From Penicillus capitatus (Eukaryota; Plantae; Chlorophyta): DNA of 64,000 bases. This document shows, piece by piece, positions 4,007 to 61,622 of this stretch. Position 1 is the first letter of the stretch; each line of letters begins with the position of its first letter. The position numbers and the translations under genes are program-made. The stretch is from positions 666,301 through 730,300 of the forward strand of contig OZ287704.1 in the NCBI GenBank assembly GCA_965649825.1, written 5' to 3'. Below the pieces are notes generated by a model. It was not told the origin of the DNA and searched no databases. It saw only the letters and a program-made list of their open reading frames with translations.

Positions 4007-6096
4007 TCACAGTTTCAGAACAGCCCCACCACCCGACGGCTTGGATGCAAAGATGCAGACATCCAATGCATCGGCAGCGATCTAGTCACATCACCCTCGA
4101 AAGAGGATTGCCCTCCTGTTGAAAACGCGACAGACCTGTCCAGATTGGATGCGCTTTGCATAGAAGCTGTCTTTGACGCTCTGTGTGAAGACGGCTGTGT
4201 GGGATTCGGGAATCAGAGAGACGGCACATCCTCCCCATCCTGCACCTGTTAATCGACTTCCCAATGCTCGATTTGCGTTGCAGATGGAAATCTGAGCATC
4301 CAACATCATGTGACGTTGCTATCGAGGCAGGCAAGGGTCACCAGTTCCTCAAGCTCAGGGCAACTGCAGTCGTAGAGGTCTCGACAACTGACATGGCTCG
4401 CATTCATATAATCGCCGATTCTTTTTAATTTCTCGTCTTCTGTCAGACCCGCATCCTGTCACATCAGAAAGGAGAATGGTACTTCGCATGCATTGCACAC
4501 TTCGCAGATTTCTTTGACACGCAGGACTCGAGCAGATTCTTCAAAAACATGAAGCGCTCGTTTGTGTAGCCGCAGTCCTCTGCCATTATCCCTTAACCAT
4601 TCCAAGACACGGAGACCGTTAGCAGAATCCTCAAATGACTTGTTCAACGAACAGCCGAGCGCGTCCTCCACCTGCACGATCGCAGTGTTCTCCATCCAGT
4701 CTAGGCATGTCTTTGAGAGACCTCTTGCACTGTATACTCTGCATCTCTCAGTACTTTTCTGACCAGATTTCCACAGAGAGAAGCCGGCACATCACCGTTC
4801 GACGATCCCAGCAGTGACGCTGCTCTCTCTGCTAGATCCTCGAGATCTTCGATCTGCTTCAACATCTTAATGTCTTGAATACGATCAAGTGGCAAACCGA
4901 GGGCTTGGCCCAGCAACATCGCTGCTGTCCGACACTCAACCACACGGAGATTGTATCTAAGTGCAAGGCAGTCGACGCCAGAGTGCGTCATATCGTGTGG
5001 CAAGATCTGACCTTTCAGCTGCTGTCTCTGCTTTGTTGGAGACGGTCAAGGAGTTGGCCACGACAAATGTGCCAGACAATGGCAACGATACATCTGTTCC
5101 CCGAACCTAGTCGGCCGGCACAACACGCAATGAACGGGATCGTGCACAAGGTGCTGGTACTGGATTGAATTCAATGAGCTTTGCAAAACCGGGCTCTGCC
5201 ATGATAGAGATCGCCTGATCCATTCCGCCAGATTCCGTCCCCGAATGCCTCTCACATGTGCATGTAAACTCAGCAATGTCGGATTTGGTCACGCGCTCTA
5301 ATAGCTGATGCACTGCCAAGATGGCTAGTGCAGAAGAACACACCAACGCAGACGAGCTTGATAGACCAGACCCTATGCAAAGCTGCTGGTGGCCTGGATG
5401 ATAAAAGCATGTGGCATGACCTGTCGGCACACGCCCGTCCACAAGGACCTGGAGTCCACTCGGAGTGGGATGCGAGATACCTCTGCTGTTTAAGAACTCA
5501 TAAACTCCCTGCGAAACGCATCGGTGACGGAGCTATCTGATTTCAATGTCGAATGGACCTTGTAGGCGGCCAGGAAGTAATTTGTCCATGCTTTGGACGC
5601 GATATCGACCTCTTGCTCTGGATCTACTGAATAGTGATGTGCCGGATACTTTTTCTCGTTCGAATTGATAATATGCAGTTCCTCTCCGTGTCGCCGTACT
5701 GCCACGACGGTATCCTGGTCAGCAGATCCAGCGGTACCTTCTGTGCAGATTGAATGCATTTGGACACACTTGTGCAATTGCCATGGGGAAAACGGCATAG
5801 CCTTCGTAGTCGATATGCTCCCCGATCAAATTCACTCGACCTGTGTCAGAGTAAAGAATCCATCCAGCGTTGCTCAAGAACACACATCACGTACCCGGTG
5901 ATCGGGCGTAGCACTCGGGCTCCGATTGGAAACACTCGATAAACTTCTTTCGAATTTCTTCGAATCTCTTCTTCGCATGTTCTGTGAATTGCCTTTAGCC
6001 ACAGCAGCTAAAGAGCGAGATCACTTTACCGTTGTCTGCACCGTAGACGTCGTCGATATTCGTGACGGTCGGAACGTGATCGCCATGGTCCATCAT
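4007..6096 (-). CDS. GALK: Galactokinase (GHMP kinase)
   Basis: Spliced product MMDHGDHVP...YARSPG|RVNLIGEHIDYEG, GSGLSSSSALV, CERHSGTESGGMDQAIS, GSRLTGAGWGGC, ending FASKPSGGGAVLKL*. Confidence 0.95.
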
Positions 6097-6168
6097 CAGA
6101 CGCGACGGACGAAATCGACGAGCATTCAGTGCATCGTCGCGTACCGTGCATTCTCTTGAGGCTTCATC

Positions 6169-8098
6169 ATGGGCAAAGGTCGAGACAAACGCCGAAAGAA
6201 GAAGGGCAGCACAAATGCTGGACTCGGTGCTGTTAAGACGCAACGAAAAACAGCCAAGAACGAAGAGAAGACGGAACGGCGACTCGATCGACGACTTGAA
6301 CGCGACGAAGAAGACGTCGACGCACTCATTGCGAAATTCAAACTGGAAGACGAACGCAAAACGCAAGTCGTCATTGAAGACGACTGCGACCCGCCCTCCG
6401 TTCGTGTGCATGCCACGTACACATCCCTCCCAGCAGAGGTCGAATGCACCTCCCTTCTTTTCTTTGCTACATATGGGTAACCAACGCTAGGTGCACAAGG
6501 ATGGTCTAGTCATGGTGTTCGGTGGAGAATATGAAGATCAGCAGGATCATCGGGTGTACACTTACAACGACCTCTACAAATTCAACTGCGAGAAGCACAG
6601 ATGGACCAGAATCGTGGCTCCAAACGGGTGCGTGTCTGCAGATCTTCTGGCAGCATCCATCTGTGTTCGGCTTGTAGTCCATCGCCAAGGTCTTCGCATC
6701 AGACAGTGTACTACAAAGGCAGTCTCTATGTTTTCGGTGGAGAGTTTACATCGCCAAGACAGGATCGATTCAAACATTTCAAAGATATCTGGAGATTTGA
6801 TCTCTCGAGCAATGTATGGGAGAAGTATGATATGAAGAAGGGTCCGACAGCACGTTCCGGCCATCGAGCTGCCGTCTACAAGGACAGAATGGTTGTCTTT
6901 GGCGGATTCAATGACGCCGGAGACGAGGCAGTGTTCGCCAAGACTCGCTATCCATCGTCCTCGTGGATTCCTGGTTGTTAGATACTACAACGATGTCTGG
7001 GTGTTTCATCTGGACGAGCTGCGCTGGGAGCTCGTGGCGGATGATGCATCTCAGAAGCCAAGCAAGAGAGGTGGCTGTCGAGCCGTGGTCCATGATCACT
7101 ATCTCTACATCTACGGAGGGTACTCGAAGTACAGGGATGAAGAGGACAAAGACATTGAACATGGGAAGACAGTCGATGACATGTGGCGACTCAACCTGCA
7201 TAACTACGCGGTACCGTGCCAAGTGTGTGAGACTATGTGTGAGTGTGGTCTCCCAGTGGGAAAAGGTCAAGAAAGCGGGAATAGCACCCAATGTGCGTTC
7301 TGGATTCAATATGTGTCTCCATCAACATCGATCCATCTTTTTTGGAGGAGCGACAGATAACGAGGCCAGGAAAGGTGAGCACATGCTGTGTCTCCTATCG
7401 AGGAAGTTGGTCGGATGTTGCTGTTCTTAGGGGAGAGCATCATTTCAGATTTTCACAACGATCTGTTTCAGTTCAACTTTGAAAAGCAGAGATGGTATAC
7501 AGTCAATCTCCGACCGCCCAGAATCGCCCGAAAGGATATTCTCCCGGGTTAGACACACCGGCTGCTTTACTCCATGACAGGAGCTGTTTCTTCAGATGCA
7601 GCTGCTGCGGCAAATCTGGCAGAAGAGGAGGAGAAACTGAGGAGACACAAAGCTGCTGTGAAGATACAGTCCAGGTGCGTCTCAAAGGGCAGTGGGTGAA
7701 GAAGGGAGTTAACTTGTCGCTGTAGGTATCGTGGCTACGCTGTGCGAAAAGCATACAAGGTGTACAAATTGGGAGGCAAAGTGACTGAACTGCTCTACTC
7801 TCCAGCGACATACGGATTCGATCTTTCTGTTCTCAACGCTCCGAAGCCAAGAGGACGCATCTCCGCCGGTCTCTGTGTCGTCAAGCATCATCTCTGGCTG
7901 TTTGGAGGCATCGTTGAGATTATGGACAAAGAGATCACACTGGATGACATCTGGCGACTCAGTCTGAAAAACTACGATGGATGGCATTGTATCAAATCGA
8001 ATATTGTGGGAGAGGACATCTTCAAGGAGGACCTCCAGAACACGGAGGAAGAATCGTCTGGGTCTGAAGACAGAGAGAGCGACATGGACACCGATTGA
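6169..8098 (+). CDS. KLHDC4: Kelch domain-containing protein 4-like, with an internal IQ motif
   Basis: Basic N-terminus MGKGRDKRRKKKG...KTQRKTAK, kelch repeats (VFGGE, YVFGGEFTSPRQDRFKHFKDIW, RSGHR, VFGGF, LWLFGG) and an acidic C-terminus. Confidence 0.9.
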
Positions 8099-8288
8099 TC
8101 TCAACAAAGACACCATCTTCACTCACTGTTCATAGAATAGCCATTCCTGTGTCAAAAAGATGGTTGGTAGAATTTTCAGCTTCTTCTGCTCGAGATTCGA
8201 GATTCGTGCGCGAGCGACGGCCTGGTGAGGAGGGTGGAGATGAGACGAGATGGCACTGATTGTCTTCGGACGCTTCGGGGTCGATAGT

Positions 8289-8362
8289 GGCTCCTTAGCT
8301 CAGCTGGTTAGAGCGCGGTGCTAATAACGCCGAAGTCATGGGTTCGATCCCCATAGGAGCCA
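8289..8362 (+). tRNA. trnI-AAT: tRNA-Ile, anticodon AAT (IAU), intronless
   Basis: GGCTCCT/AGGAGCC acceptor stem, D-arm TAGCTCAGCTGGTTAGAGC, anticodon stem CGGTG-CT AAT AA-CGCCG, T-loop GGTTCGATCC. Confidence 0.97.
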
Positions 8363-11594: not shown

Positions 11595-14500
11595 ATGAAC
11601 CGAGGCAGGGTTGGAGTCGTCTTACGAGTAAAACCACGAGAAGAGAACAAACATTCCGACCGTTTGACCGTCTTGGACGCCGAAACGGTAAAAATACCAG
11701 AAACAGATATCGCTGCAGCATCCCCAAGAATAGCCTGACTCAAGAGCGAGTTCTGACGATGGAATGGTGTGTTGCAGGGCGGAGCTACTGTCATTCTCAA
11801 AAAGTCTAACAGAAACGAGGAGCTGTTTCAGGCACGTACAGCTTTTCTTCATTGAAAATGGAGAGGAATGAGTCTGCTTGTGCATAGTATCGATTTTATC
11901 GGGCATTGGAAAATGCATCGCAGGAGAAAACGTATGCCGTTTGCGGCGAAGAAGTGATAAACTCGTGTTTGGAAGGATACAATGGGACAATTTTGGCCTA
12001 TGGCCAAACAGGAGCTGGAAAGACATTTTCGATGTTTGGACCAGATGGCATCGGACACGACGATATCGAATTTCATGGGATTATGCCTCGTGCAATAGAA
12101 CATGTACGACAGTCTGTCATCACAATGTTGATGTGACAGTTGCATGACGGTTGTCGTGCCTAAAGGTGTTTTGTGGCGTTAAGCGCAGTTTGGAATGGCA
12201 AGTGAAAATGACATTCGTTGAAATTTACAATGAGACATTCAGAGATCTGTTGACACATTCACGGGCGCCCATTTCTGTACAGGACAGTTCGAATAGGTCA
12301 CCGTCCATACCGTATAGACCTGGTGCTTTATGTGGCATTGGTGTTTAGAGGAAAGGGTCCGACCTACCTCAAAGGACTGACACCCGTCAATGTTCGATCG
12401 GTGGAACAGGCATTTGAACTGCTGTTGGAGGTAGAATACGATCGATGGATTTCGTGTGAAGATGACAAGTGTATCCCCAGGGACAAGAAGCAAGAAGCGT
12501 CGCTGCTCATGCGATGAATGATCGTTCTTCGCGTTCTCATGCAATTCTGACACTGTGGATCGAAATCACGACGGAAGGTGCGTGCAGTTAGAGACAAGTG
12601 AGAAAAGAGTGAGATTGAGCTGTCTGTATGTGTGTTGCAGATGGACGGACTCGGAAGTCAAAACTTAACATGGTTGATTTAGCTGGTTCGGAACGCACCC
12701 GCAAGACTGGCGCTGCGGGTACCATCGCAAAGGAAGCAACATTCATCAACAAGTCACTCAGCTGTCTCTCAATGGTCGCCAAAGAACTGCGAAAGAAATC
12801 GACCCATGTGCATTATCGAGATTCAAAACTCACACACTATCTCAAGGTACAGGCATATCGTAAAGAGTGATAAATTTCACGAGACGATGATGTGACAGGA
12901 TTCATTAGGGGGGAATTGTCGCACGCTGATGATCGCTTGTATCTGGGGAGATGCTAATCATCTTAACGAGTCTCTGTCAACCTGTCGATTTGCTGACGAT
13001 ATTCAGCAGGCAAGCGCAATGGATTCTTTGGCTTTCGTTATCTGCCATTGGTTACAGGTCGAGGTGAACGTTTCGAAGAACAGTGGCGTTGAAAGTGTCC
13101 ATGGAAATCTGTTCAAATTGAATCCAGCTATGACAAAGTACATCGATCAGATGATGGCGAAACGCGTTGCGCAGGAGAAGGCAAAGATGTTCCGGGATTT
13201 AAAAAGAAGAGGCCTGGTGACACAACTGGGTGACACGATGGATCTCATTGAGGAAACTGACGAACAGCCCACGGCAGACGAAGAGTATTCGGAGCTCGAA
13301 TCCCTTCGAAAGAAGGTTAAGGAACTGGAGGACATGGAGGCGACCAAGAGAAAGTGGGGCGTCTCCAAGGAAGGCTCTTTTGAAGAGCTGCAGACATTGA
13401 GGCAACGCGTTGCAGACCTGGAATCGGAAAAGGAGGAGGTGCAGTACGAGATGCAGCAACGTATGAAGGAAGCGGAATCGAGTTTACTGGAAGAAATGCA
13501 GGAGCTCCGAGTAAAGGTCTGTGAGCTGCAGAAGATCCGAGCACTGACCCACAGCGAATGCTCCGAACTGTACGCCCTGCGAGAACAGATGTCACAGGTG
13601 GCAGGACGGCGATCACGGAGCGGTTTGAAAAAGACATACAAAACATGGCATCCCAGCATGTTCATGGGCAACTGTGACATGGCAATCCAGGAGCCGTACC
13701 CGGAGCCGGCGAATCGAAGAAAGATTGCTGCGGGCATTCAACTTCCACCGGACCCTACGGAATCGGAGTCTTCAACAACAGATGATGACCATCAGAGTTG
13801 CCAGACCGTGGAAGAGCAGGCTCGCGTTGTGGGTCAGCTGGAGGGACTGCGAGATCGATTACGGGAACTGCACGATGTTGCCGTGGGCAAACTCACACAG
13901 GACAACTATGATGAACTCTCATCCATCCGCGATCGGATACTTACATTTCGGTCAATGGATATGAGCGCCGAGGAAAAGCCAGATGAAGATCACGGCATCT
14001 TGAACGAACTCGAAGGCATGCGAGAGAGACTGAAGGAACTGCAGTCCGTGTCCGTCGACCGCATGACACCAGACAATCTGAGGGAACTCGCACATATCAA
14101 AGACAAAATCGTCACCCTTCAGGTAGTCCACCTATGGGCCCTTTGAGGATGAAGGGATGTGTGTTGCTGCCTACAGAACAATGACAGGGTCAGAAATATC
14201 TTGGCATCGAGGAACGAAGCAACCGTGTCGACACAGCCGCTTGTGACGAGCGCCTCAGCAGGGCTCTTTCTGGAGAGCTCACCCGGCACGACGCCCTCGA
14301 GTGCGCATCACCAGCACAGTTTGTCTTCACATCTCCAGTCGTTCATGGAGACTCCTCATGCTAGAACACGCGTCCCATCTCCCAGAGACCATAATCAGCC
14401 TCCTCCTTCAACAAACATGGCTCCATGTATAGCTCACTGTTCCTTTCCATCGCCTGCTGAGGAAGACGACATTGTGCAGTTGAAGGTTCTCTGGATTCTA

Positions 14501-14993: not shown

Positions 14994-16681
14994 ACGTTCT
15001 CCCTAAGGCTTAACTTCTTTTCCTGACTCTGTTTAATAATTCCCCGACATAAGAGAACTGTTTTCAAGTCACCATCATCAAGTTGTGATTCGCTGCATGC
15101 ATCCTGTTTCAGCAACGTTTTCGTGCACGATGTCTGATGTGACAGGAGTTCTGACATCTTTCTTTGCTGTGACGGGGACTTCCTTTCACGGTGGAAGACA
15201 GAGTCTGTTAACCCCCTTTCGCCACCGCTTGACCTTTTTTATTGAGGTACTGTGACGATCGATCATCAATCATCCGCTTGCCAAGCTGCAGCTGTTGAGA
15301 TGATTCGTTCTTTCAACATCCGTCTGTGCGTTCACAACTGAGTCGTTCCGTTATGTCTGTCGATTTATTCCGTCCTCTCAGTCGTGATAGCCACCACGCC
15401 TTATTCCTACGAATCGTTTTGGTATCCTGTCTTCTTTTGATGATATACACTTTGCGTCGTCGAACGGTTTGTTTATATCTGGAGGGGTGGGATGATGCAG
15501 GATGGAGCTTTTGTGTTGTGGCTGATTGTTTTGTTTGTTTTTGTTGTCGTACATTCTCCACAGCTGCATGATTCGATTAGTGAGCGAGCGAGTTATGTAT
15601 AAATCACGCTACCCTCGAATTTGTGAAAAAAAATAAGCCGAGAACTTAATGGAAGGTGCGCCGAGTGCGCTACAGGAATAGGCAATAACATAAATTGTCT
15701 AGGAATGTGCGTGGCATCTTTACCGCCAGGAACACAACGATGTTGCTTATGGCTTAAATAAAGAAGAGGGATCGTTTAATGTGTGATGCCAAGCCGTCAA
15801 ATGTGATCCGGTCTCACGCATAGATCGCGATATTCATCGCAGTGGAAGTGTTTTTGTCGTGTGTGTGTTGGGGACGACAATGGGGTGTTACAAGCAGCAT
15901 CCATGTCCGAGCAATGGGGGTGAACTCTCCTGTAAATACAGAGCAACACCTGGTTCGGAATCGGTCTCCTGCCCACCACCGAAAGACAAAACGGACGCCA
16001 TGCGGTCCCGCTCAAAGATGGAGGCAGTATGTGGACTGTGGTATTTTGGTTTGTATCGGGTCTCGTCTCAGGACAAAGCGCAGCAAGACGGATCATGTGT
16101 TTCACACCGCGGTCGGCATTGCCATTTGGCATTCTCGATGCAGCGTGCATGGATTTAGAGGTCTGGTTGATGTCGCAGTACCTTCGGTCCCTCCTGACGA
16201 TTGTGTTTCGACAAACGTATTATGTTTTGCAATTCAGATCTCCGGTCTGATATTCGTATGTTGGCCGCCCTGTTATTCTTTACCATCTTCATGTCATGTA
16301 GCAACAATCTCAAACAGAATCTCAGCGTTTCATTCTTTGAGACGATCTCGACGCGATTCGTGACGACCATCAGACGGATACCGTTTTGTACAGTACTGTC
16401 TATCGCGGCAGCTTCATTTGGAACATTGCCAATGCGTTGCTCATGTTTACTGACAGTTGATGATGCAAAACATCACACAAAATCTGTTCGACTGTATCAA
16501 CATTGATCCGCACAGTCAGGACAACGAAGAACTGTTGTGTTAATAAAATGATAAAAACGGCCGGAAGAAGCAGGCCATGTGGAATGATGATGTTGATCAG
16601 CCCCGCCCGATCGACATTCACATTCCGTTCGACTTTATACCGGAGAAGAGATTTTTAGCAGCAATAACGAAACACACATTT

Positions 16682-37568: not shown

Positions 37569-38557
37569 TCACTTCTCACTCTTGGACGGGATTTTCGGAA
37601 CGATCAGGCCGTAACCGAATTCCTTTCGCTTGTATACCACTCGGATATCACTGCCTTCCTTATCCTGGAAGATGTAGAAACGGTGTCCTAAATTCTCCAT
37701 CGCCTCTGTGGCCTCTTCAGGCGTCATAGGTTCCAGATTAAACATCTTAGTGCGGACGATTTCTGGCATCTGTTCTTCTTCGATCTCGATGTCCGAATCG
37801 ATCGACTCCATATCTGGCTGCATCTCCTCGATATCGGCGGCTTGCCTTTCGCCGCGTCTGTATCTACCGCTTCCTGGCCATTTGCCTTTGATCATCGCAA
37901 TTTCTTTTACTTTCTGCATCTTGTGCTTCACTTTGTCGCCCACCAAATCGATTGAGGCATAGAGACTACTCGCTGCCGTTTCGGAACGCACGACACCGTT
38001 GCGCAAGGTGTAGATGGTGACTTCTGTTTTCTGTTCTCTGTTAGCGGATCATCATTTTTGCAAGTGTGAGAATGATGTGACGTTACTTGACGCCTTTGGT
38101 CCCTGTGTCTCCTCCTCGAACAGAAAGAGTGACTTCTGCCGTTTTGATCGACTGAGCATAATGATGCAACGCCTGTGCGATTTTCTTCTCGGCGTAGTTT
38201 CGGATCGCATCTGTCACTTCAAGTTTGCGTCCCTTCACGATAATCCGCACCGTTTCCGCTCCTGTCGGAGCTGCCGCAACGATCTCAGTCTCGACGGTCA
38301 CAGCATGGCGTCCCGTTAGAGGCGTCGTCGACCGCAGTCGTTCACCAAACACGGCTAGAAAGCAGCTCTTTCTAATAAGGCTTCTCAAACAAGGCGCTTA
38401 CTAGACCGGTAGCGATGCAAACGTGTCAAACGCGACGCTGGGGTGGTCGGCTAAAGAAGGAGATGAGGGGAAGCGGATGGGTATGTACGGGCCCAACCTG
38501 AAGAGATCGATGGCACAGCGCCCAACGCGGCTGTGTTTTTAGAAGGGTGGCGTCCAT
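37569..38557 (-). CDS. PSRP1: Plastid ribosome hibernation factor PSRP1 (long HPF / S30AE)
   Basis: Spliced transit peptide, then RIIVKGRKLEVTDAIRNYAEKKI, LSVRGG, EVTIYTLRNGVVRSE...LYASIDLV.DK, and C-terminal VRTKMFNLEPMTPEEA...LGHRFYIF...VVYKRK..GYGLIVP. Confidence 0.93.
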
Positions 38558-38649: not shown

Positions 38650-39507
38650 TCAGGAATAGAAAGGCAAAATCTGTGTACAAACGTAGGCCCATGCCACGCC
38701 AGACAGTCCACCCACGAGCCATCCAGCCGTAAACTCATTCCACCTATATACGCACAAACAAACATCTGTCTCTTGTCTGTCTGACTGGACATGAAGGCAA
38801 CGATCACGCAGCACTGTAAACAAGAAAGCCTTTGTTCTCTGGGCGAGAAAGATCTTTGGAGTCACATCACACGAGGTGCAAAACTCCAAGAGTGAACAAA
38901 CACACCCATGATCAGACAGGAGGGCATTTCTCACTCTTACCCGTCAGCGCTTTGGAGAGGGTCCCGTTGGATCTCTCGGCCTGTCAAGGTCTTGAGTCCC
39001 ACCTGAGGCTCGTTATCTTGAAAGGTAACCGCGCCGTATATGGATAGACAGCCAGTCAAGATGGCCACAAGGCCAGCACCGGCAAGGCAGCCAGCGACTT
39101 CGGCAGTGCCGGGGACATTGCGCAGGGGACCGAGTTTGATGAAAGGACCGACGAGAAAGAATCCGTGCGTCAATCCGATTTCGACGCCTCGTAAGAGAGG
39201 CGCGACACCTGTCCTGTAGGCAGGCAGGTTCGAGAGGAACGACGCAACGATCGGTGCCGATGTCACAGGGGTCTCCAGCATCCCGATAAAGGGATCGCCA
39301 TTCAACGGCTGAATGATTTGTTTCTACGCAACCACGACACGTCGATAGCGTCGTCTCTTTGGATACGATGGCCGGTACTTTGGGCTCGGCATTCACCACA
39401 GTGTTCGTTCGTGCAGAGCTAGGACGCGAACGCAGTCCATAGATACCGACGCCCAACGGCGTCCTGGCGACGGCGGCGGGTTGGGTGAGCGTCGTTGAGC
39501 GGATCAT
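38650..39507 (-). CDS. PSAL: Photosystem I subunit XI (PsaL), nuclear-encoded
   Basis: QPLNGDPFIGMLETPVTSAPIVASFLSNLPAYRTGVAPLLRGVEIGLTHGFFLVGPFIKLGPLRN...DPLQSADG|WNEFTAGW. Confidence 0.98.
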
Positions 39508-43400: not shown

Positions 43401-44947
43401 ATTCCAAAAACAGCAGTCCAGTTTCCGCCGTGTCCTGGTTTCTGGCCCTCTCCATCACACCATACATTCCCGGAAGATTCCATTCGAATTCGACCTCCGG
43501 TAACGGCGCTTTGGCTTCCGTTCGACGGACAGGAAACGAAAACGTGCTGAGAAGAGTGAGTGCTCGCTGAACAGATGCACAGCTGCACCAAAAAGTAAAG
43601 GGATCCGATTCCATCGATCCCAGATAGGCATTGCCCTCCTTTCGGATCTTCAGATGCAGACATGCCTTCTGTCGGAGCTGAGGAAAACCAAACTGCCAAT
43701 ACGCGCATTGCTCTTCGCAGGAACGCATCATAGAGTGCAATGTCTGCGGAATTTCGGACCTTGTCGTGCACGGCGTCATGGGATCGGCACCGGGACTTTT
43801 GTCGACGAACCTCATCCCTCCGACACGCATCTCCAACTCTCTGCGATCTCCGTGTGTCCCTTGACACTGGACATCTTTCAGATCGAGCAGAAACGCAAGT
43901 TGGGCGCCTTCGTCGGACGTTCCGCGGATCATGACCTCCGTTTGATGCACTTCTGCGGAGAAATCGATCGACCGGAACGGGGATGCTTCCTCCTCGAGAG
44001 GCACATCTTCACAATCAAAGAATGCCGAGTCCGAAACATCTGAGTAGACAGAGCTCGTTCTGGAAAGGTCCATTGCATCGTAGTAGACAGAAGACGCTGT
44101 GTCCATAGCATCTCCAAAATCGCTGTCGTCTCCATCCTCCAGCGACAACAGTCTTTTCACACGATGCCACACATCTGATGTGACATCGAGCTCTGCGCGA
44201 TCGATCTGCAGGCGACTTTCAATTCTGTCCGTGTCTGAAAGGCCCAGCATCAATGCCACCGTCTTGAGGGCGAGAATGCGTTGGTCCTCTGTGGATGTGT
44301 GTGGCAACGACAGGTAGACTGTTCCCACTGTCACTCGAGGCTCCACTTTGCCGCAGCTGTCCTCTGTACACGTTGCTGCTTGATACTGTACATCTTCCAT
44401 TTCCATCTGCAGCGTGGCGTTTCGCTGGGTTTCTAACAGAAGAGTAAGATGCTGAATCTTGACGCCTAGATTTGATGTGAACCATTTCCAGACCGTATGG
44501 GCAATGGGAGCCGCACTCTTCCAGATAGCACCCAACGGCAAGAACCCCATAATCCCGCTGTCCTTGTTCCCTTCTGACATCGTCTCATTTTTCGCAGTCA
44601 GTGCTGTTGCCAAATGAATAGTCACTCTTTCAAGTTCCAATGATGTACGACAGGTGGCTAAATCAATGACACGGAGCTCTGCTCGAGTCGCATGTCCTCT
44701 TCGAAGTTCCAATCCAAAGGCAGCCTAGAAACGCCGTCCCCTCGACAAAGTGCATTCAGATGTGACAGGCGCATACGAGTTCCGTATTGAAAGCTGTGGT
44801 GTTCAGCAGAACATTGCGAAGTGTGACCTGTTTGCGATGCAGTTCGAGGGCGAGGGTTTCGGGGTCTCCTTCGACGACCAAGTACCGACCACAGATATTT
44901 TGCAAGACGGTTGCCAATGGACTGCTGACAAAACTGCGCACGTTCAT
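40423..44947 (-). CDS. ATG2: Autophagy-related lipid transfer protein 2 (VPS13/ATG2 family), compact
   Basis: Chorein-N-like start (NICGRYLVV...LELHRKQVTLRNVLLN); C-terminal YFQR...VVDYCPRKVDL..LKRG...ELINMVQWEG...W..DI; ATG_C-like amphipathic tail; one ~3.4-kb exon. Confidence 0.8.
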
Positions 44948-45159
44948 CGTTGCGAAGCGAAATTCCGGGTCAACCCCGTCGGACAACTCCACTGATGTGA
45001 CAGGTTGTCCGTCCATGATGTAAGAAATGATGCAGCAGCATGTATCGAATGAGTTCATCAGAAAACGAAAGCGAAAATACATCAGACAGCGAGATATACT
45101 GAAGAGGTACAGCCAAAGCAACCACGTCAAACAGAGAGAACACGGTGTTCAGTGCTATC

Positions 45160-46771
45160 AAATCATGCGGAGATTACATGTGATGATGCGAAGTCTGCCG
45201 TCCCTGTCGGATTTCACTTCCTATTGTCGCTCCCCTTGTCATAAAAGAAGCATCTGACAAGACAGGACCCACTCAGCGATACCATAGGACACATGATCCA
45301 TACCATCAGGCTTGGACAAGCCGCCACTGCCGTTTCGGTAGAGTAAAGGTTGTGGAGGATCTTCTTGAGATGTACGGGGTTGGCTGTCTTCGAGCTCTTC
45401 TTGGGGAATACTCAACATTCTCATGATATGCGTGCCAGACAGTATCACTTGATCGGTCGGATCAGACAAATCGCACGTATCTTTGGCAACTCTAGATGTA
45501 CTGCCTTCCGATTCATCGCGCCCATGTTTACTATCGTTGGGCTGTTTCAGATTCGATGGTCTCAGCCCTGCCAAGCGCTGGCTGAGCTGAACCCGTCGCG
45601 ATTCTGAAGATTCATCCGATTCCACGCGCTGCATAGGAATACTGGACGTTTGTTGTCGTACTTCTTGCTGTTGCTGTTGCTGAGCAGATGCTGTCTACAG
45701 GGAACGCACCCCACATCTGAACAAACAGAAACGGCAAATGGAAGTAGTGCTTACGACATCAGGTGATCCGCCAGCAATGTAGTCCTCATAAGACATTCCG
45801 GTCGTTTGAGGTGGCCGAAACACAGGCGGCGGCGGTCTCTGTATCAGTGGAGATGTGACATCCTCGCGTGGTTGCTCTTGGTGGCCTTCTGGACGTCGTC
45901 TTCGTGTGTCTTCTCGACTGGGCATCATGCTGTCGACCAAAAAACCGCATCCCGACGAAGAAAGAGTGAGAAAGGAGAGATCTCACTCCCATGGGTCTGG
46001 ATCTGTATTCGATGGAGGTGGATCCATAGAATTGTCTCTCTTCAAGCTTGCCGTGTCTTCTCGGCCGACCATCGGTTCGTTTTTCGAATCAAATTCCGAC
46101 AGGTTTGTATCGACAGTGTCACCCATATTAAACATAGGTTGTTGCTGTGGTTGTACCGGCGCAATAGGGGGCATCATCACTTGTCCAGGTCGAACAAACA
46201 CCTGCTGCGTTCCGTACTGATCCACATATGTCATCGGTTGTACAGCTACACAAAACATGATGTGACATCTGCTTCTGCATACCTCTCTCGGTGACGTCTT
46301 ACCTGGCGGTAAAGTCGGTTGCATGTACATCTGTTGTCCACCAGGAGGATAGACCATTGTTTGGGGAGGGTGTGGGATGGAGGTTTGCGGTGGTCGTGGT
46401 AAGGACGGAGTCTGGTGGTGCATCTGTCCAGTGTACGATGGCTTATGTGCTTCAATTTGGGCCTGAGCTTCAGCTTCTCTCCAGATTCTCGCCAGAGCAA
46501 CGCAATGACACAACAGATGCGCCAAAAAATCACCTGCAGCTGAGCCATCCAAACCGTACTTCCTTCTCATCCGTTCCCTCAACATCCATCCGCAGCAAAG
46601 ACAGTATCCTCCAATGCATGATTCGACCACTCCTGCAGGGGGTTCTTCGAATTGCTCAGAGGTGGCGTAGTATGCCAGAGCAGGACAGAGAATGGAAGCA
46701 AATAGTACACGACAGTCGCCAAAAATCCCTAAAATATTTGTCCTCCACGGCAACGGCACTGTCGATGCCAT
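45160..46771 (-). CDS. PLAC8 (Cys-rich) domain protein with long P/Q-rich disordered tail; 3' end approximate
   Basis: WRTNILGIFGDC...ILCPA...GYCLCCGWMLRERMRRKYGLDGSAAGDFLAHLLCHCVALARIWRE. Confidence 0.85.
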
Positions 46772-48196: not shown

Positions 48197-49468
48197 ATGG
48201 CGCTGTGGACGGAGAAGGTGCCGTTTCCTTTTGTATTCGATCAAAAGAGCCAGCCTGCTATCTAGTATTGCCCGAAAGAGCAGGGAGCCTTCCGTATTCA
48301 CAAGGGCATTGTCGAACGCTTCGAACGCCTTGTAAGTTATGGATATCTGTCGATGCTCATGCAGGTGTATAGGCCTTGACGTCGGATCTGCCACATTTGA
48401 TTCTGAATGGACAGTCGGGATCGGGCAAGACCGTTCTTGTTCGGCAACTCTTGCGACAGATCTTCGGCTCGACTGCTGATCAGGTAGCGCCGCAGCGATG
48501 GGACGGTGATTTGAGTGTCACATCAATGAGGTAGGTGTCTATGACCCATGCGCCGACGACGCTGCAGGTTTCGAGCACGAGGAAAGTGGAAATCGACATT
48601 CGTTCGTTCTGGAGTCCTGTCCATGTCGAACTGACGCCATCCGATTATAAGCAAAACGACATCCACGTGATCCAACACGAAATGAAGCAGATCGCCAATC
48701 GAAGACTGAAGCATCCCTTTGGCGTCCTGGTGCTCAACAGCGTCGAAAACATGAGCAAAGGAGCGCAACATGCGTTGCGGAGAACAATGGAGAAAGCTTC
48801 AAAGTACTGTCGGATCGTGATGTGTTGCTCCAATCTTTCGCAAGTGGCACCCTCGGCCCATGATGTGACGTCTGGGCAGCGTATCGTCTGCCATAGGTGG
48901 TGGACCCCATCAGGAGTCGCTGTACGATCGTCCGCGTGCCCTGTCCGACCACAATTGAGCTCTGTGGTCTGTTGCGAGATATTACAAAGGCAGAAGGATC
49001 TGAGATCGAGAAAGAGACGATCGAGGATATCGTTGGCAGCGCCGGACGGAACATTCGTCGCTGTATCCTCTCATTACAGGCCGTTTCTCTGAGACGTCAC
49101 TATACGGGATCGTCGAATGCGATCCACGAACCCGAATGGAGAATGAAGATTCGGGTGAGGGAGATATGAAGAGACGCAGGGTGAATGGGGTGCTGTAGGA
49201 GATGTCTGAGCAGATGCTGAAAGATCTGGATGCCAAGACAGTGTTTGAGATGCGGAAGGGTCTCTACGAGTTGCTCGCCAGTTGCATTCCGCCGTTGACC
49301 ATTCTGTCGACATTTTTCGACGAACTCCTGCCGAGATTCACGGAGGATGAGCTGCACGAATTCATCAGAGTGACAGCGCACTATGATCAGGAGCTTCGGA
49401 ATGGAGGAAAGTATATTTTTCATTTGGAAGCTTTCGTTGTGGAAGTCATGAGTCTCTGCTCTGGATGA
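48197..49468 (+). CDS. RFC3: Replication factor C small subunit (human RFC3 / yeast Rfc5 type)
   Basis: MALWTEK|YCPK, DLPHLILNGQSGSGKT, HVELTPSD, QHALRRTMEK, PIRSRC (SRC motif), GRNIRRCIL, IFHLEAFV. Confidence 0.9.
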
Positions 49469-49703
49469 GCGTGACGCGTCAGACCCTTGACGCACGTCAC
49501 ATCAGACAGAGGACCGTAAAAGAGTGATAGATGCCTGTCGCACGACGGTTATGTGACATCGAAAGAGTGACGATGATCCGAAGACGTGTCTGTGTAGTTA
49601 GACGTTTCGCGCTCTCGAAAATCGTCGCTTGGCGGCTGTGGTGGGATAAGAAGCGTCGAGAAACAATTGAAAGATTTTTGCACGTTGATGGAGAGATCTC
49701 TTC

Positions 49704-50901
49704 TCATACAATTTCCAATGGACGGTCCTTCCATCCAAATTTATCTTTGTGTGCGTTGTAGATACGAGTGAGTTCCTCGATCACTTTTTCGTGAAGCTTA
49801 TCCACAGCTTCTTTAAAATTCGGATCGTCGGCCGAAACAGCCGATTCCACTTTAACAGGTCGACCCACCACCATATAGATCGGATGCGGCTTCGGAATGG
49901 GCAGACCCCACCTACCATCACCACACGTCACATCGTGCGCGCACAATCTCTGTCGTTTACCGTCCGACCATGATGCCGACACTGATCCTCATCTTTCTGC
50001 AGAGATCGATGAGCGATTTTGGACCGATGGAAAGAATCCTGCTGTTTCCAAAATGGAAGACAGGGACGATGTCAACGCCATTCGTCAAAGCTAATCGTAC
50101 AAAGCCCTTTCGGCGACTTAACAAAACCTAAAGCCGCCATGGCATACAACACAGCCTCTTGATTGCGGAATGCCCCACCTGCTCTTTCGTTTCGTGCTGC
50201 ATGAACATCTCTGCAATGCCGCCGACGACGATCGCCACCGAAGCTTTGGAGATGAGCGCATTGAAGTGTTTCTTGTCTGCCGGTTGTGACCCCAACATAC
50301 ACATGAAGTGTCGATAGAGGGGAATCTTAAACAGTACATCTGCTGCCAGAGAATAAATCTTCTCGCCCGGAAACATCTTGGTAATGAGCGTTCCTGCTAG
50401 AAGGGGACCGATCGGAAACGTCCCGTGCGGAAACTCGGCAAAGAGATACCTCCGCCTAGGCGACAACTTCTGCACACCAAGTAGTTTGCACAAAATCTGC
50501 CGAGTTATGTGCTGGAGGACCTCTTCCATGTAGTAGGAGAAACTAAAGTACTGTCTCCAGAGTCTGAAGATCTCGAGGTTCAGAAAAGCTTCCGAGAAGA
50601 GAGGGCATGGCAGCAAGAGTGTCGATGCTATGAAGAGATTCAGGATCAAGATCGCCGGGACAAAGCTCAGCAGCAATAGAATAAACAGAATGTATGGCCA
50701 TGATGTGTACAGTGCTAGAGTGAACAGTGCGATTCCATGCTCCAGCAAGGACTGGTCCTCGACCATGCATTTCTCATCCGGATACACTCGCGTTTGAAGA
50801 GGGCAGGGATACGGTTCGTCCTCTTTGGTTTTATCTGAGGGTGCACCGTACGAGAGGGCGTCGCTTGGAGGATCATGCAACGCCGCATGGACCGAAGCCA
50901 T
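49704..50901 (-). CDS. DGAT2: Diacylglycerol acyltransferase type 2 (algal DGTT)
   Basis: WRQYFSF (YF), AEFPHG, VVGGIAEMF, RRKGFVR, IVPVFHFGN, MVVGRP motifs; N-terminal TM segment. Confidence 0.93.
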
Positions 50902-51859: not shown

Positions 51860-52973
51860 CTATGGGACAGCATCTGTTTGCTGGAACCAGGAAGACCATC
51901 CTTTCATCCGTAGGTCCTCTGGGAGCTGCAGCCAAGCCTTTGCAATGGCAGCTGAAAGCACTTCGTCTTGGATCCACGTTTTCTGTGACGGGTGACAAAA
52001 CTGGGACGCAGTGGCACTGGCTCTCTGCTTCATGAATTCTGCTGCTTTGGTAAAGGGGTTCTCTTTCGAAGGAGCAGTCCCCATATTGCCACTCCTCCTG
52101 TCACATCATGTTATGGAGAGTGGATGAAGACCAGAGTAAGCGTGCCTCCTTGCAAGGATGACGGTATCTTCTCTGTGACACGACTTCATGACAAATTCCA
52201 ACAGAGCGAGTTGCTTCCTCTGGACAAAGTAAATGCAGTCAACGGGACACATGTCCATTGCTTCTCGAATCCACTCTTCTTCATCTCCCCATTGATGTGA
52301 CACCCGTGCTCTTCCCCACTCCTCTTCGATGAAAAACGTATTCGATGCACATCCAGTACAGTTTCGACATCCTAGATGTTGTGTGTGATCTGATGGGACA
52401 GCTGTGAATGGAGGGGGTATACCGATACAGTTCGTTTCATCCACAAAAACGGCACGATGCTCGCGATCGCTTCCGAGCCAGTGACTCACAGGTCGGCCAT
52501 CGAAAAATCCATGGAGCTGTCGAAACGCTCGGAGCTCTGCATCGTAAGGACGGCGTAGATCGATATCCATCAAAATCTGATAGGCTTTGTTCAGCAAAAC
52601 GGACAGATCAATCGCGGCATCGCCTACAGCAACGTCCCATCAACCGTCCTCTGGCGCTTAGATAACCTGCAATGTCGGGATGCACCAGTCGCTGCTTCTC
52701 ACGGAAGGCCGCTTTAATCGACGTCACATCAGCTTCTTGACTGATCCCGAGCAGCTCATAGAAATCGCCCGGCGCCGAGGTATTGTACTCGAGGCGAAAA
52801 TCCGGCACCTCTTTGTAGTAATACCGTTCGTCGTCGGTCCACTTGACGAGCGACGTTGCATGGCAGCGCACATCATATTTCCTTCCCGATCGACGTCCTT
52901 TGACCGAAAATCGCTTCACGGGAAAAGCAAAGAGATTTGGATAGAAGGCGACGACGGGTGCCATCCGATCCAC
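51860..52973 (-). CDS. Chloroplast DnaJ-ferredoxin protein (J-domain plus 4Fe-4S; CDJ3/4/5 type)
   Basis: DFYELLG...IKAAFREKQRLVHPD...LNKAYQIL; VFVDETNCIG|CRNCTGCASNTFFIEEEWGRARV...MCPVDCI. Confidence 0.92.
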
Positions 52974-54669: not shown

Positions 54670-54937
54670 GCCATCATTCACTACCTCGTGACTTCTCTGT
54701 CGAATGGACATGGATGCAACAACGATGTGTCATTCGGATGTGACGTCCCGCGAGCCGTCAAACGACTGTCGCGTAGGCTTGATCCGATTGATCCTCTAGA
54801 AACGACGTATAAATACCGCCCATCGTTGTCGCGTCTTGTGTTGCTTACGCTTGTGTTGTGGCCTTCGCGGATACTCGAGTCCTCACCGCTCAAGTGCACC
54901 GTCGTCGAAGCCATACGCTTACCACAAAGAATCCGAG

Positions 54938-56403: not shown

Positions 56404-56561
56404 ATGCCATGATTGGTTTCTGGCCTCAATTCCAATAGACACACATTGTTGCGGGACATGAAATCTATCATCTGCATCCAGTGAATGCTGCATGATTCCT
56501 TTTCTTTGCATTCTCTCTGCCTTCAACATGATTGATGTGACACGTGTGGATTGAGTGTGCA

Positions 56562-56566: not shown

Positions 56567-56720
56567 TTTGAAGGGTCAGGCCGAGGAGAGTTTGCTGCTG
56601 TAGATGCTGCTCTGATAAAGCAGATTTGATTTCGACTCTTTCGCGCACGTCACATCGCAATAACGTCTTCTCGATGAAAAGACATCGGAAAGTCCGTTTC
56701 TATACCTTCTTGGTCGACAT

Positions 56721-60484: not shown

Positions 60485-60518
60485 GATCCGTGCGCGTGGG
60501 ATTGTGCAATTGACGTGA

Positions 60519-61468
60519 ATGGTTTTGGTTCTGGTACTTCATACCCTCGACGACATTACGGCCACGGTGCCGATGTGCGTCATCCTCCTCAACGACATGC
60601 AGATACGCAAACAGATACCCGAAGGCTTTCATCTGCGAGAGGCACGTGTGACGCATCGGATGGAGCGTGCAGAAGTGTCATGCATCTCCAGGTGGTTCCC
60701 ACGACAGGACAGACATCGACCAGTATATGGGATGTCACAGACCTCGCTTTCTTTTCTGAATGGCTCGGACAGAGCCTTGGTCCGGGTGTCACGCATTCTG
60801 TTATGGAAGTGTGTGAATCGAGCTGCGAAGACGGATGCTTTGCTGAAAGAGTGAGTGCGGTGTTAGATTGTGGAGCGGTTTTCGATTGGACTGATGGGGC
60901 ATGTCAAGCAAGCACGGACGGCAGAGAAGGCCAAAAACCAACTGGCAGCCATATCGACCTCGACAAAGACGGCAGTCTCGAAAGCAGGAGAACAGGTAAA
61001 GAGGCACTGAGTCCAATGTCTGAGCAAAGATGCTGTGTTGCAGTTGACTGAGTTTGACAAGAAGTATGATATTTCGGAGCGAACGTCGCAGACCTTTAAA
61101 GTGTGATCTCGCTCAATAACGGACGGAGTCTTTGAATTGTTGCTGGCAGAAAATGTCGACGGCAGCATCTCAGGCAAAAGAACGCGCCATGGAGAATCCG
61201 ACAATAAACCGCGTCTCGACCAATGTCAACGCTGGTGTACAAGCTGGAATGTAGGATCCTGTGCATGGCCACAATACGTCCCATCATCACACTATTGCGT
61301 AGAAAATCAATGGGATTGGGCATTGACTGGGCCCGGCAGCGTCTGTCGGGATCACTGGGGGGCGGGACATCACCTGCACGTACACAGCCGGGAAATCCAC
61401 CGACAGAGCCTCCTGTCAATCAAGCGCCTCCCGTTTCGACCACTGCTCCTCCGCCGGCGACACGGTAG
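60519..61468 (+). CDS. Hypothetical protein with amphipathic helical core and Pro-rich tail; start uncertain (60519, 60572 or 60597)
   Basis: Six segments join in frame through 50-60-nt introns (...GFHLRE|VVPTTG...SVME|IVERFSIG...AGEQ|[19 protein letters not shown]|KMSTAA...). Confidence 0.5.
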
Positions 61469-61622
61469 AACGGATCAAGATCTGTTGATGTGACAGAAAA
61501 ATGAGAGATTGTTGGACTAGGGTGGAAGGCAACAGGGAAGCGGTTTTTGATCTTGAAGGCGATGACGACGGAGCATGACGACTTGTATGTTTTGACGTGA
61601 CGTCTCAATCAGCTTATCGGCC

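Follow-up and report, generated by a model that had tools for sequence, protein, structure and literature searches.

The question raised by this locus is why one 8-mer, GATGTGAC in one orientation or GTCACATC in the other, recurs in the non-coding DNA of the window (the whole 64-kb stretch that was analyzed), and what might read it. The window holds 27 exact copies compared to 4.2 +/- 1.8 in dinucleotide shuffles, the largest of which gave 9; none of 100 shuffles attained 27. Whole-window Markov expectations are 4.5 at order 3 and 9.3 at order 5, and the 9-mer TGATGTGAC is the most overrepresented of its length, with 21 copies versus 1.0-2.5 expected. When the window was split by our own gene models and Markov models of orders 3, 4, and 5 were trained on the non-coding DNA alone, 24 non-coding copies were found against 2.6, 4.4, and 7.5 expected, and the 3 coding copies stood at chance level (about 2 expected). 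(T)GATGTGAC is about ten-fold too frequent in introns and other non-coding DNA. The first-pass annotation had counted at least 24 copies and placed them mainly in non-coding DNA. All 24 of its starts were correct and the location was borne out (24 of 27), but three copies, at 38074 (+), 48517 (-), and 54737 (+), had been missed; the excess persists under the 4th- and 5th-order non-coding models (24 versus 4.4-7.5) against which it had proposed to set it. GTGACGT, which it had also described as recurrent, is indeed enriched (22 copies versus 8.8-15.8 expected), and nine of the 22 are the GATGTGAC word followed by GT. The copies are given below with their strand and, for many of them, their state in the sister species.

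4085..4092 (-): sense, abutting the TAG of the 54-nt last galactokinase intron (4082-4135, - strand); annotated by hand from galactokinase homology; unchanged in the sister (L005)
4458..4465 (-): sense, galactokinase intron of 63 nt (4456-4518), abutting its AG; galactokinase homology; unchanged in the sister
12130..12137 (+): sense, mid-intron in kinesin (12104-12165, 62 nt), 28 nt 5' of the 3' splice site; sister has the enriched variant GATGGGAC
12889..12896 (+): sense, kinesin intron 12847-12898 (52 nt), abutting its AG; junction LTHYLK/DSLGGN; unchanged in the sister
15136..15143 (+): within 1.8 kb of highly conserved DNA that lacks a long ORF
22882..22889 (+): sense, first intron (22854-22899, 46 nt) of a Sec8-like gene, 10 nt from the 3' splice site; comparative model; unchanged in the sister, flanks diverged
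32088..32095 (-): convergent 3' region of genes ending at 31670 (+) and 32456 (-), in a conserved island of about 60 nt
32200..32207 (-): same convergent 3' region (31670 +, 32456 -), followed by TAG (TGG in the sister); 8-mer unchanged there beside an adjoining 28-nt deletion
32689..32696 (-): sense, epimerase-like gene, abutting the AG of its 53-nt intron 32687-32739; comparative gene model; unchanged in the sister
38074..38081 (+): antisense, 49-nt PSRP1 (- strand) intron 38038-38086, 5 nt past the 5' splice site; unchanged in the sister
38861..38868 (-): sense, last PsaL intron (38854-38940, 87 nt), 7 nt from the AG; unchanged in the sister
44177..44184 (+): antisense, within an ATG2 coding exon; compatible with chance
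44759..44766 (+): antisense, ATG2 intron 1 (44725-44776, - strand), 10 nt past the 5' splice site, followed by AGG; unchanged in the sister despite an indel in the far flank
44994..45001 (+): antisense to ATG2, whose start codon lies about 50 nt downstream in the direction of that gene; followed by AGG
45852..45859 (+): intergenic, with a minus-strand gene on either side; palindromic form GATGTGACATC; not conserved
46259..46266 (+): antisense, 57-nt PLAC8 (- strand) intron (46246-46302), 13 nt from the 3' splice site; indels in the sister mark the stretch as non-coding
48517..48524 (-): antisense, RFC (+ strand) intron 48484-48534; sister has GACGTGAC
48862..48869 (+): sense, RFC intron 48844-48896, 27 nt from the 3' splice site
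49496..49503 (-): convergent intergenic DNA between RFC (+) and DGAT2 (-); sister has GGTGTGAC
49927..49934 (-): sense, last DGAT2 intron (49912-49960), 15 nt from the AG
52100..52107 (-): sense, GC-AG intron of 48 nt (52098-52145) in a DnaJ/4Fe-4S gene, abutting its AG, the intron being predicted from the codon periodicity of substitutions; sister has GACTGTGACAG
52294..52301 (+): antisense, coding exon (Fer4 domain); compatible with chance
52723..52730 (-): sense, coding exon (J domain, ...EADVTSIK...); compatible with chance
54737..54744 (+): between the first and second alpha-tubulin genes, 68 nt past the stop codon of the first
56534..56541 (+): between the second tubulin gene and a D123-like gene (both + strand)
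56649..56656 (-): intergenic, second tubulin/D123-like gene, 115 nt from the 56534 copy and in the opposite orientation
61487..61494 (+): 136 nt upstream of the ATG of an EF-hand/thioredoxin gene, followed by AG

The word is sharply defined. Among the 24 single-mismatch variants of GATGTGAC, 21 stand at background level, and the 33 matches to YGAYRYGAC include 21 that are the single word TGATGTGAC; the variant GATGGGAC is also enriched, and its intronic copies are all sense (3:0). The flanks of the copies share no similarity beyond 8-9 bases, no longer repeat, repeat family, terminal inverted repeats, or target-site duplications were found around them, and the duplicated DNA does not contain them. 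Away from splice sites, AG is the next dinucleotide after 5 of 22 copies (1.4 expected), including the antisense copies at 44759 and 44994. A second word, AAGAGTGA, is the top intron word, with 8 copies compared to 0.14 expected, four in each orientation; twice it is fused to the 5' splice site, which it overlaps as GTAAGAGTGA. The word itself is built of two TGAY units 5 bp apart and is commonly extended to TGACAG or TGACGT.

Comparison with the sister species, at about 85% identity, showed that 15 of 20 non-coding copies are unchanged versus 19% of all non-coding 8-mers (P = 9e-8). Identity is 0.90-1.00 within the 8-mer and about 0.7 in the flanks, so that the footprint of purifying selection is exactly the 8-mer. 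The unchanged copies include four of six antisense non-coding ones (three of the four antisense intronic ones) as well as conserved copies outside introns at 32088, 32200, 44994, and 15136, and the word is enriched too in the sister loci L001 and L004. Its preservation in this way marks the word as a genuine functional signal, which may be read in DNA or in RNA. In loci of more distant relatives it is nearly or entirely absent (0 copies in 19.9 kb of L003, 2 in 21.1 kb of L006), and on these loci the word is lineage-specific. Motif-bearing introns nevertheless occupy identical positions in L003 and L006, where they lack it: kinesin introns 1 and 5, the last DGAT2 intron, the PSRP1 intron with the 38074 copy (position common to L003), and ATG2 intron 1. 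Therefore, the word arose inside old introns.

Introns, whose median length is 52 nt, hold 14 copies in 4.3 kb, or 3.3 per kb, whereas the rest of the non-coding DNA has no more than 0.5 per kb. Ten of these copies are sense (0.2-0.4 expected) and four antisense (0.14-0.24 expected; P about 1e-4); when the word and GATGGGAC are pooled in confident introns, the ratio is 13 to 4. Half of the sense copies adjoin the AG of the 3' splice site (P = 7e-5) compared to none of the antisense ones, and every sense copy lies within 28 nt of the intron 3' end. The five copies that the first-pass annotation had placed at intron 3' ends (4085, 4458, 12889, 32689, 52100) hold on the evidence of homology, a junction, a comparative model, and conservation, and its antisense copies in ATG2 (44759) and PLAC8 (46259) are joined by two more, at 38074 and 48517. 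The remaining intronic copies, five sense and four antisense, are scattered along the intron and are thus neutral in orientation; two of the antisense ones lie close to the 5' splice site. Outside introns, where the transcript strand is unambiguous, two copies are sense and three antisense. Positions -13 to -5 of the introns are G+T-rich (G 31%, T 36%, C 21%, A 13%), and by this composition a pyrimidine tract is absent at their 3' ends. The word is present in just 14 of 79 introns and so cannot be a general splicing requirement. A simple branch point, doubted from the start, was rejected because copies away from the AG are neutral in orientation (5:4); moreover, four antisense intronic copies stand against about 0.2 expected, and the five sense copies at the AG would place the candidate branch adenosine, that of GAC, at -4, which is too near the 3' splice site for a branch.

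These observations are best explained by (T)GATGTGAC being a discrete lineage-specific cis-element kept by selection in the non-coding parts of genes, chiefly in introns of about 52 nt. A DNA-level factor site with putative protein binding is the most economical single reading, and we consider it plausible, if short of probable, that a sequence-specific factor recognizes (T)GATGTGAC as double-stranded DNA, the word being similar in sequence to TALE-homeodomain sites, among them the ZYRE of Chlamydomonas. A sequence-specific protein, possibly a DNA-binding protein of the TALE type with an effect on transcription, would recognize the word in double-stranded DNA, where it would act in either orientation as an intragenic regulatory site. 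The two TGAY units with the TGACAG or TGACGT extension would then correspond to the architecture of a TALE-homeodomain heterodimer site (ZYRE, YGACAYGAC); we take TGACAG to be the MEIS/KNOX consensus. Copies would pile up at the 3' splice site because the last three bases of TGATGTGAC-AG are common with the fixed CAG/G, so that only seven or eight more bases need match there, and AAGAGTGA, overlapping the 5' splice site as GTAAGAGTGA, behaves likewise at the other end of the intron.

Enrichment, sharpness, selection, orientation neutrality, the AG extension, and the parallel word AAGAGTGA all favor such a site. The neutrality and the conserved antisense and non-intronic copies also support the DNA-level element proposed in the first-pass annotation, but nothing points specifically to the general regulatory or nucleosome-positioning factor that it had suggested. 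Against a DNA site stand the intron density, with 9 intronic copies remaining versus 3-5 under uniformity even when the five that abut the AG are set aside; the sense orientation of all of those five, although GTCACATC-AG could share CAG equally and the composition of the 3' tract gives merely a two-fold preference for the sense word; the sense-only GATGGGAC; and several copies that lie in last introns where genes converge, with the nearest start codon over 1 kb away (4085, 4458, 49927). Transcription-factor sites are also usually more degenerate than the word seen here. In Chlamydomonas reinhardtii, the ZYRE is a zygotic response element and the proposed site of the TALE heterodimer GSP1-GSM1; it lacks strand bias and is enriched in promoters, 5'UTRs, and introns, with a functional intronic copy (PMC4889651). 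Like it, TGATGTGAC is a 9-mer of two YGAY units 5 bp apart; seven of its nine positions agree with ZYRE and eight with the functional intronic variant TGACGTGAC, from which it differs solely by CpG to TpG, and at 46886 a single C-to-T change at a CpG, visible as a polymorphism, is the origin of one copy. The ZYRE is degenerate, with its peak at 51-100 bp before the transcription start, and is a mark of zygote-specific genes (PMC4889651); by comparison, one exact word dominates here, a promoter peak is not evident, and the word is densest in the introns of housekeeping genes, with five copies fused to the 3' splice site.

The main alternative, possible but on balance doubtful, is that the word works at the RNA level, UGAUGUGAC in the pre-mRNA being bound by a lineage-specific splicing factor or forming a fused branch-site/3' splice-site signal. 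Two UGAY units followed by AG would help in recognition of the 3' splice site where very short introns have lost their polypyrimidine tract, and the seven-fold greater density in introns, the sense excess, the copies at the AG, the confinement of sense copies to the 3' end, and the G+T-rich tract agree with this, as do the orthologous introns of AT-richer relatives, which have TTGAC, CTCAT, or a T-rich tract in that position (in L003, the last DGAT2 intron has TTTTGAC at equal distance from the AG). However, an RNA signal would not account for the antisense intronic copies, mostly conserved, or for the conserved copies outside introns, the neutrality of copies off the AG, or the few introns involved; the adenosine at -4, the poor pairing of the word with the canonical U2 GUAGUA (by hand), and the unused AG between the motif and the true splice site in introns 12104 and 48844 tell against it as well. 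The yeast Mer1 enhancer AYACCCUY is reportedly a factor-specific intronic splicing enhancer. It is read by one dedicated RNA-binding protein and, like the present word, is a sharp 8-mer in a subset of introns, but it is strand-specific, and the conserved antisense and intergenic copies do not fit this. Another precedent is the fused branch-site and 3' splice-site motif ACTAACACAYAG/ of Trichomonas and Giardia (PMC13548475), likewise a fixed word ending at the AG of short introns with a branch-like unit 8-9 nt upstream (CUAAC there, UGAU here); that motif is sense-only, with a canonical CTAAC, and present in practically all introns, whereas 5 of 79 are fused here and the word also occurs elsewhere in introns, antisense, and outside them. 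The Mamiellophyceae, green algae with short introns, have an extended branch point GACTGACG, BOC1 introns, and introner elements (PMC2483917, PMC3879977). Their lineage-specific extended word also contains TGAC(G), and BOC1 introns are short and signal-poor; however, GACTGACG is sense-only, 40-50 nt upstream, and found in most canonical introns, and this alga lies outside the mamiellophytes, with about 55% protein identity to its nearest named relatives.

Pairing within or between introns, by which sense and antisense (or partial) copies draw splice sites together or loop out exons, is improbable. The copies at 48517 and 48862 flank an RFC exon, CATCATT pairs with AATGATG in the PSRP1 intron, and CTGTCATCA pairs with TGATG..ACAG in the kinesin intron 12104 (z = -4.6 against shuffles); motif-bearing introns form more stable folds than their shuffled counterparts, with a mean z of -1.15 (n = 13) versus 0.02 for other introns (n = 29). 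This gap rests on three introns, however, and most copies are without a complementary partner in their own transcript; pairing does not need one exact word genome-wide, and covariation was not seen. The eroded ends of an introner-like element, suggested in the first-pass annotation, or footprints of another mobile element that made or invaded introns, are contradicted by the data and a very remote prospect. A lineage-specific word in both orientations and in non-coding DNA only would suit them, but the same introns are older than the word, there is no repeat or flank similarity, one copy arose from a single C-to-T change, and selection holding the exact 8-mer is the opposite of erosion; introners show intron-length similarity and presence/absence polymorphism, neither of which was seen here. 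That codon usage, dinucleotide bias, or local duplication produced the excess is almost inconceivable. The order-5 expectations of 7.5-9.3 lend this some color, but they are inflated by the motif's own counts, and 24 versus 7.5 is still highly significant; shuffles, the enrichment in sister loci, and conservation refute such an artefact, as does the position of the copies outside duplicated DNA.

For the double-stranded DNA site, precedents also exist among short elements that lie in introns or transcribed DNA and act independently of splicing. These include the Arabidopsis intron-mediated enhancement motif TTNGATYTG, confined to about the first kilobase of a gene (bioRxiv 10.1101/269852), and the enhancer in RBCS2 intron 1 of Chlamydomonas, which is active in either orientation (PMC6952782). 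Both differ in sequence from the present word, and compared to TTNGATYTG some copies here lie in last introns (4085, 49927).

An exact search of the window returned 27 copies of the 8-mer GATGTGAC/GTCACATC (referred to below as the word), compared with 4.2 ± 1.8 copies and a maximum of 9 in dinucleotide-preserving shuffles. All 24 starts listed in the first-pass annotation were correct, and three additional copies were found at 38074, 48517, and 54737. Together with a preceding T, the word forms TGATGTGAC, which is over-represented beyond any other 9-mer in the window (21 copies versus 1.0–2.5 expected under order-3 to order-5 Markov models). Coding exons hold 3 copies, where about 2 are expected. 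Non-coding DNA holds 24, versus 2.6 (order 3), 4.4 (order 4), and 7.5 (order 5) predicted by Markov models trained on non-coding sequence only. The enrichment therefore survives a 4th–5th order model of non-coding DNA, under which the first-pass annotation had reasoned that a spurious signal should vanish. The 8.6 kb past the window's right end, which consist for the most part of long exons, contain no further copies.

The flanking bases that the copies have in common are limited to a T at −1 (21 of 27) and an A or G at +1 (24 of 27); the dinucleotide after the word is AG in 10 copies and GT in 9, with TA(G) in 2. Only two of the 24 single-mismatch variants exceed expectation, namely GATGGGAC (10 versus 3.6) and GATGTCAC (12 versus 4.7), and three of the GATGTCAC copies are palindromic sites read from the opposite strand. 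The degenerate pattern YGAYRYGAC has 33 matches, 21 of which are TGATGTGAC itself, and the other 12 are within the expectation of 15. No longer repeat family containing the word was found in the window, and the word itself was not found in the searchable literature. The observation is real and robust: chance, composition, and duplication as its cause are excluded by the shuffles, the repeat search, the Markov and conservation analyses, and the enrichment at loci of a sister species.

The genes of the window are green algal and include those for PsaL, the PETs EF-Ts polyprotein, PSRP1, DGAT2, ATG2, alpha-tubulins, and kinesin. Their nearest named proteins, from Chlorella, Pedinophyceae, and Chloropicon, are only about 55% identical; the alga is therefore not a mamiellophyte, and a Mamiellophyceae low-GC (BOC1) region was rejected on the same grounds. 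Close relatives for comparison came from metagenome assemblies only. Two loci (L002 and L007) are from the same species as the window (99.5% identical), and three (L001, L004, and L005) are from a sister species with 75–88% DNA identity, colinear with the window at 2.8–16.7 kb and 22.6–54.4 kb. The remaining two (L003 and L006) represent a more distant, AT-richer relative with 43–44% GC and proteins 61–65% identical. Gene models combined hand annotation of conserved proteins (kinesin, galactokinase, and the DnaJ/Fer4 gene), a dynamic-programming gene finder that scored the codon periodicity of substitutions relative to the sister species, and intron positions checked against the distant relative. 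A composition-only gene finder (3-periodic Markov with a semi-Markov intron state) was dropped because codon bias is too weak, the kinesin exons scoring about 0, and listing introns by ORF-junction enumeration was dropped because it yielded far too many candidates.

These models provided 79 confident introns of 41 to 127 nt (median, 52 nt; 4.3 kb in total), 78 of them GT-AG and one GC-AG. Their splicing signals are sparse. Only the GT is fixed at the weak 5′ splice sites, and the 3′ splice sites are TAG in 35, CAG in 31, GAG in 9, and AAG in 4. No clear branch consensus was found in these introns of about 52 nt, and a pyrimidine tract is absent from them, positions −13 to −5 being 31% G, 36% T, 21% C, and 13% A. 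Over approximately the last 13 nt, the introns are rich in G+T and poor in A; T-rich tracts are found instead in their orthologs in the AT-richer relative. The single GC-AG intron is probable, as suggested by the codon periodicity of substitutions on either side of it; reading through it, the frame would stop at a TGA within the word.

The word is concentrated in these introns, with 14 copies at a density of 3.3 per kb. The remaining non-coding DNA (at most 21.9 kb, probably still with some coding sequence) has 10 copies, or at most 0.5 per kb. Few copies are found in the 200 bp preceding a start codon (44994 and 61487). The word-bearing introns are 14 of 79 (18%, about one in six), and some genes with many introns have few or no copies: 1 of 13 introns in the Sec8-like gene, and none in the RPL19 and Kelch genes. 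Both orientations are enriched in introns, since 10 copies are sense to the host transcript (0.2–0.4 expected) and 4 are antisense (0.14–0.24 expected). Five of the 10 sense copies are directly fused to the 3′ splice site, with 2–3 nt of intron left after the word (P = 7e-5 for at least five such placements among 10 copies).

Word copies fused to the 3′ splice site, and the GC-AG intron
4085, sense, GAC-TAG fusion
4458, sense, GAC-AG fusion
12889, sense, GAC-AG fusion
32689, sense, GAC-AG fusion
52100, sense, GAC-AG fusion
52098–52145, minus strand, probable GC-AG intron of 48 nt in the DnaJ/4Fe-4S ferredoxin gene

In the remaining five sense copies, the distance from the word to the intron end is 7–28 nt. 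The antisense copies at 38074 and 44759 lie 5 and 10 nt past the 5′ splice site, and those at 46259 and 48517 precede the 3′ splice site by 13 and 10 nt. Copies away from the AG appear neutral in orientation and position (5 sense to 4 antisense in introns), although these numbers are small, whereas all five AG-abutting copies are sense. The composition of the 3′ tract at −10 to −3 favors the sense word only two-fold, so that the 5-to-0 strand result at the AG is weakly explained by composition. Outside introns, where convergent intergenic copies were left out because no strand could be assigned to them, the unambiguous copies are 2 sense (54737 and 56534) and 3 antisense (44994, 45852, and 56649). 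At 44.1–46.3 kb, five plus-strand copies are situated opposite genes of the minus strand. An AG also follows five copies away from splice sites (1.4 expected), two of which are antisense.

Among the non-coding copies alignable in the sister species, 15 of 20 are unchanged, compared to 19% of all non-coding 8-mers and 14% of those within introns (binomial P = 9e-8); at −10 to −3 of introns without the word, 17 of 76 8-mers are unchanged. Identity to the sister is 0.90–1.00 over the eight bases and about 0.7 on either side, and the T at −1 reaches just 0.65. Copies altered in the sister mostly retain (T/G)GTGAC or become GATGGGAC. Conservation extends to antisense copies, with four of six in non-coding DNA unchanged and three of four in introns conserved. 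The sister loci are themselves enriched, having 13, 10, and 7 copies in 21–23 kb each, while the distant relative is at chance level (0 copies in 19.9 kb and 2 in 21.1 kb). The copy at 15136 is inside a stretch of about 1.8 kb (14150–15950) that has no ORF above about 120 aa and no Rfam or Pfam match. This stretch is 90–100% identical to the sister, exceeding neighboring exons, and part of it (14765–14967) is a 70% match even to the distant relative; an unusual gene or a long non-coding RNA could lie here.

The word is younger than the introns in which it resides. L003 or L006 shares the positions of kinesin introns 1 to 5, and word-bearing introns at identical positions in the distant relative include kinesin introns 1 and 5, the last DGAT2 intron, the PSRP1 intron, and ATG2 intron 1. 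At their 3′ ends, the orthologous introns lack the word and have ordinary TTGAC, CTCAT, or T-rich sequence, so that the word originated in this lineage, within introns that already existed. The birth of a copy is seen within the species, in the divergent PLAC8 promoter region (46885–46893), where the window and the sister have TGACGTGAC and L002 has TGATGTGAC, a single CpG-to-TpG change at 46886 creating a copy. The first-pass annotation had suggested the eroded ends of an introner-like element. This idea, or that of transposon ends, is rejected because intron positions are shared, a copy was created by a point change, and no element-wide similarity, terminal repeats, or target-site duplications were found among the copies, whose flanks are unrelated. 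The distant relative has an enriched word of its own in L003, ATCTACGA(T), with 7 copies versus 0.7 expected, which is unrelated in sequence to GATGTGAC and not obviously intronic.

Copies of ATCTACGA(T) in L003, a locus of the distant relative (some tandem, some between genes)
148
4032
5495
5502
5746
7202
16076

The explanation that we tentatively prefer is that the word is recognized, in double-stranded DNA, by a sequence-specific protein. Such recognition would account at once for the apparent indifference to orientation and position, for the conservation of copies that are antisense or lie outside introns, and for the sharpness of the footprint. Two TGAY units with a 5-bp period make up the word (TGAT-G-TGAC), which is often extended to TGACAG and resembles in sequence the tandem YGAY/TGAC arrangement of ZYRE (YGACAYGAC), the element that the TALE heterodimer GSP1-GSM1 is proposed to bind in Chlamydomonas. 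ZYRE has no strand bias, is enriched in promoters, 5′UTRs, and introns, and is functional as an intronic variant, CGTGACGTGAC (PMC4889651). The same CpG transition that is polymorphic at 46886 separates TGATGTGAC from CGTGACGTGAC. However, a TALE site should peak in proximal promoters and be enriched as a whole degenerate family, whereas the word is mainly intronic and YGAYRYGAC beyond TGATGTGAC is not enriched. A palindromic bZIP/CRE site (GATGTGAC.GTCACATC) was rejected, as the second half-site is not conserved among nine GACGT copies. Shared bases could account for the accumulation of copies at the 3′ splice site: because TGATGTGAC-AG overlaps the fixed CAG/G, far fewer matches would have to arise there. 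Recognition as DNA does not explain well the concentration in introns, the lack of degeneracy, or the copies in last introns, far from any start codon; nor does it sit easily with the strictly sense AG-abutting copies and intronic GATGGGAC copies (3 sense to 0 antisense).

The strand bias at the AG, the intron density, the five fusions, and the G+T-rich 3′ tracts fit a word that acts in RNA at the 3′ end of the intron, as an enhancer with a dedicated binding factor or as a branch site and 3′ splice site fused into one word, which would have evolved as T-rich tracts eroded in the GC-richer lineage. We consider this main rival somewhat less likely than recognition as DNA; seven conserved or enriched antisense and intergenic copies would need a separate explanation. 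Trichomonas has a fused branch-site and 3′ splice-site word, ACTAACACAYAG/ (PMC13548475), but words of the Trichomonas/Giardia type are fixed and abut the AG in (nearly) all introns, compared to 5 of 79 here. A simple branch point, which the first-pass annotation had already doubted, is excluded: a branch point should be sense-only and present, perhaps in degenerate form, in most introns, whereas antisense copies are enriched, 18% of introns have the word, and single-mismatch variants are at background. In addition, the GAC adenosine is at −4 or −5 in five of the 10 sense copies, outside the branch-point range of roughly 10–40 nt, and two introns have unused AGs after the word but before the genuine 3′ splice site. 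A model of RNA structure or pairing, with some support from folding z-scores and little otherwise, is very improbable. Consensus U2, U1, U5, and U6 snRNAs, compared by hand, offered no convincing complementarity, and no snRNA gene was found in the window or the comparison loci. For a C/D-box snoRNA or k-turn (UGAUGU...CUGA), the introns are too short and no Rfam match was obtained.

Another exact word, AAGAGTGA(G)/TCACTCTT, is also over-represented in the window (21 copies versus about 3 expected). AAGAGTGA is the top intron word (8 versus 0.14 expected; 4 sense and 4 antisense) and is fused twice to the 5′ splice site as GTAAGAGTGA, thus paralleling the behavior of the first word. It is also lineage-specific, being enriched in the sister and having 1 copy in L003. 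Three times it stands beside a copy of GATGTGAC in the order TCACTCTT..TGATGTGAC, 3–19 nt apart.

Examples of AAGAGTGA/TCACTCTT copies in the window
12605
12863
32612
38888
38931
39831
39841
45962
49520
49563

The two words, TGATGTGAC and AAGAGTGA, could conceivably constitute a DNA-encoded, orientation-independent intron-marking system in which transcription or chromatin is coupled to splice-site choice, although we regard this as improbable. In such a system, factors would bind the DNA of very short introns in its double-stranded or transiently single-stranded state, replacing the polypyrimidine and branch signals lost as GC rose from about 43% to about 50%. If true, it would explain the intron concentration, both orientations, and the splice-site fusion together.

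Short cis-acting words are a known type of feature in the non-coding DNA of genes, and if the word is an ordinary transcription-factor site, the finding is modest. What is unusual, besides a word new to the searchable literature, is the combination of exactness, intron concentration, apparent orientation neutrality, splice-site fusion, and recent origin. One exact word under strong purifying selection in about one-sixth of introns provides a handle on the recognition of signal-poor introns, or on regulation packed into the introns of a compact genome. Moreover, the word arose within older introns after the split from a relative that keeps those introns, which offers a natural experiment on the birth of a cis-regulatory code, with a second word of like behavior alongside.

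Other features of the window were observed. A segment of about 5.8 kb (16707–22559) contains large, nearly intron-free minus-strand ORFs that are repetitive, Cys-rich, and membrane-protein-like; it has no copies of the word, is absent from the colinear sister contig L005, and represents a lineage-specific insertion or deletion. A 55-nt unit is perfectly duplicated in tandem upstream of the kinesin gene (10977–11086). A tRNA-Ile gene (anticodon AAT; 8288–8363, plus strand) lies between the Kelch-repeat and Ycf54-like genes, a position kept in the sister and the distant relative. Two tandem alpha-tubulin genes (53100–54669 and 54900–56403) share about 80% DNA identity and have short introns at identical positions.
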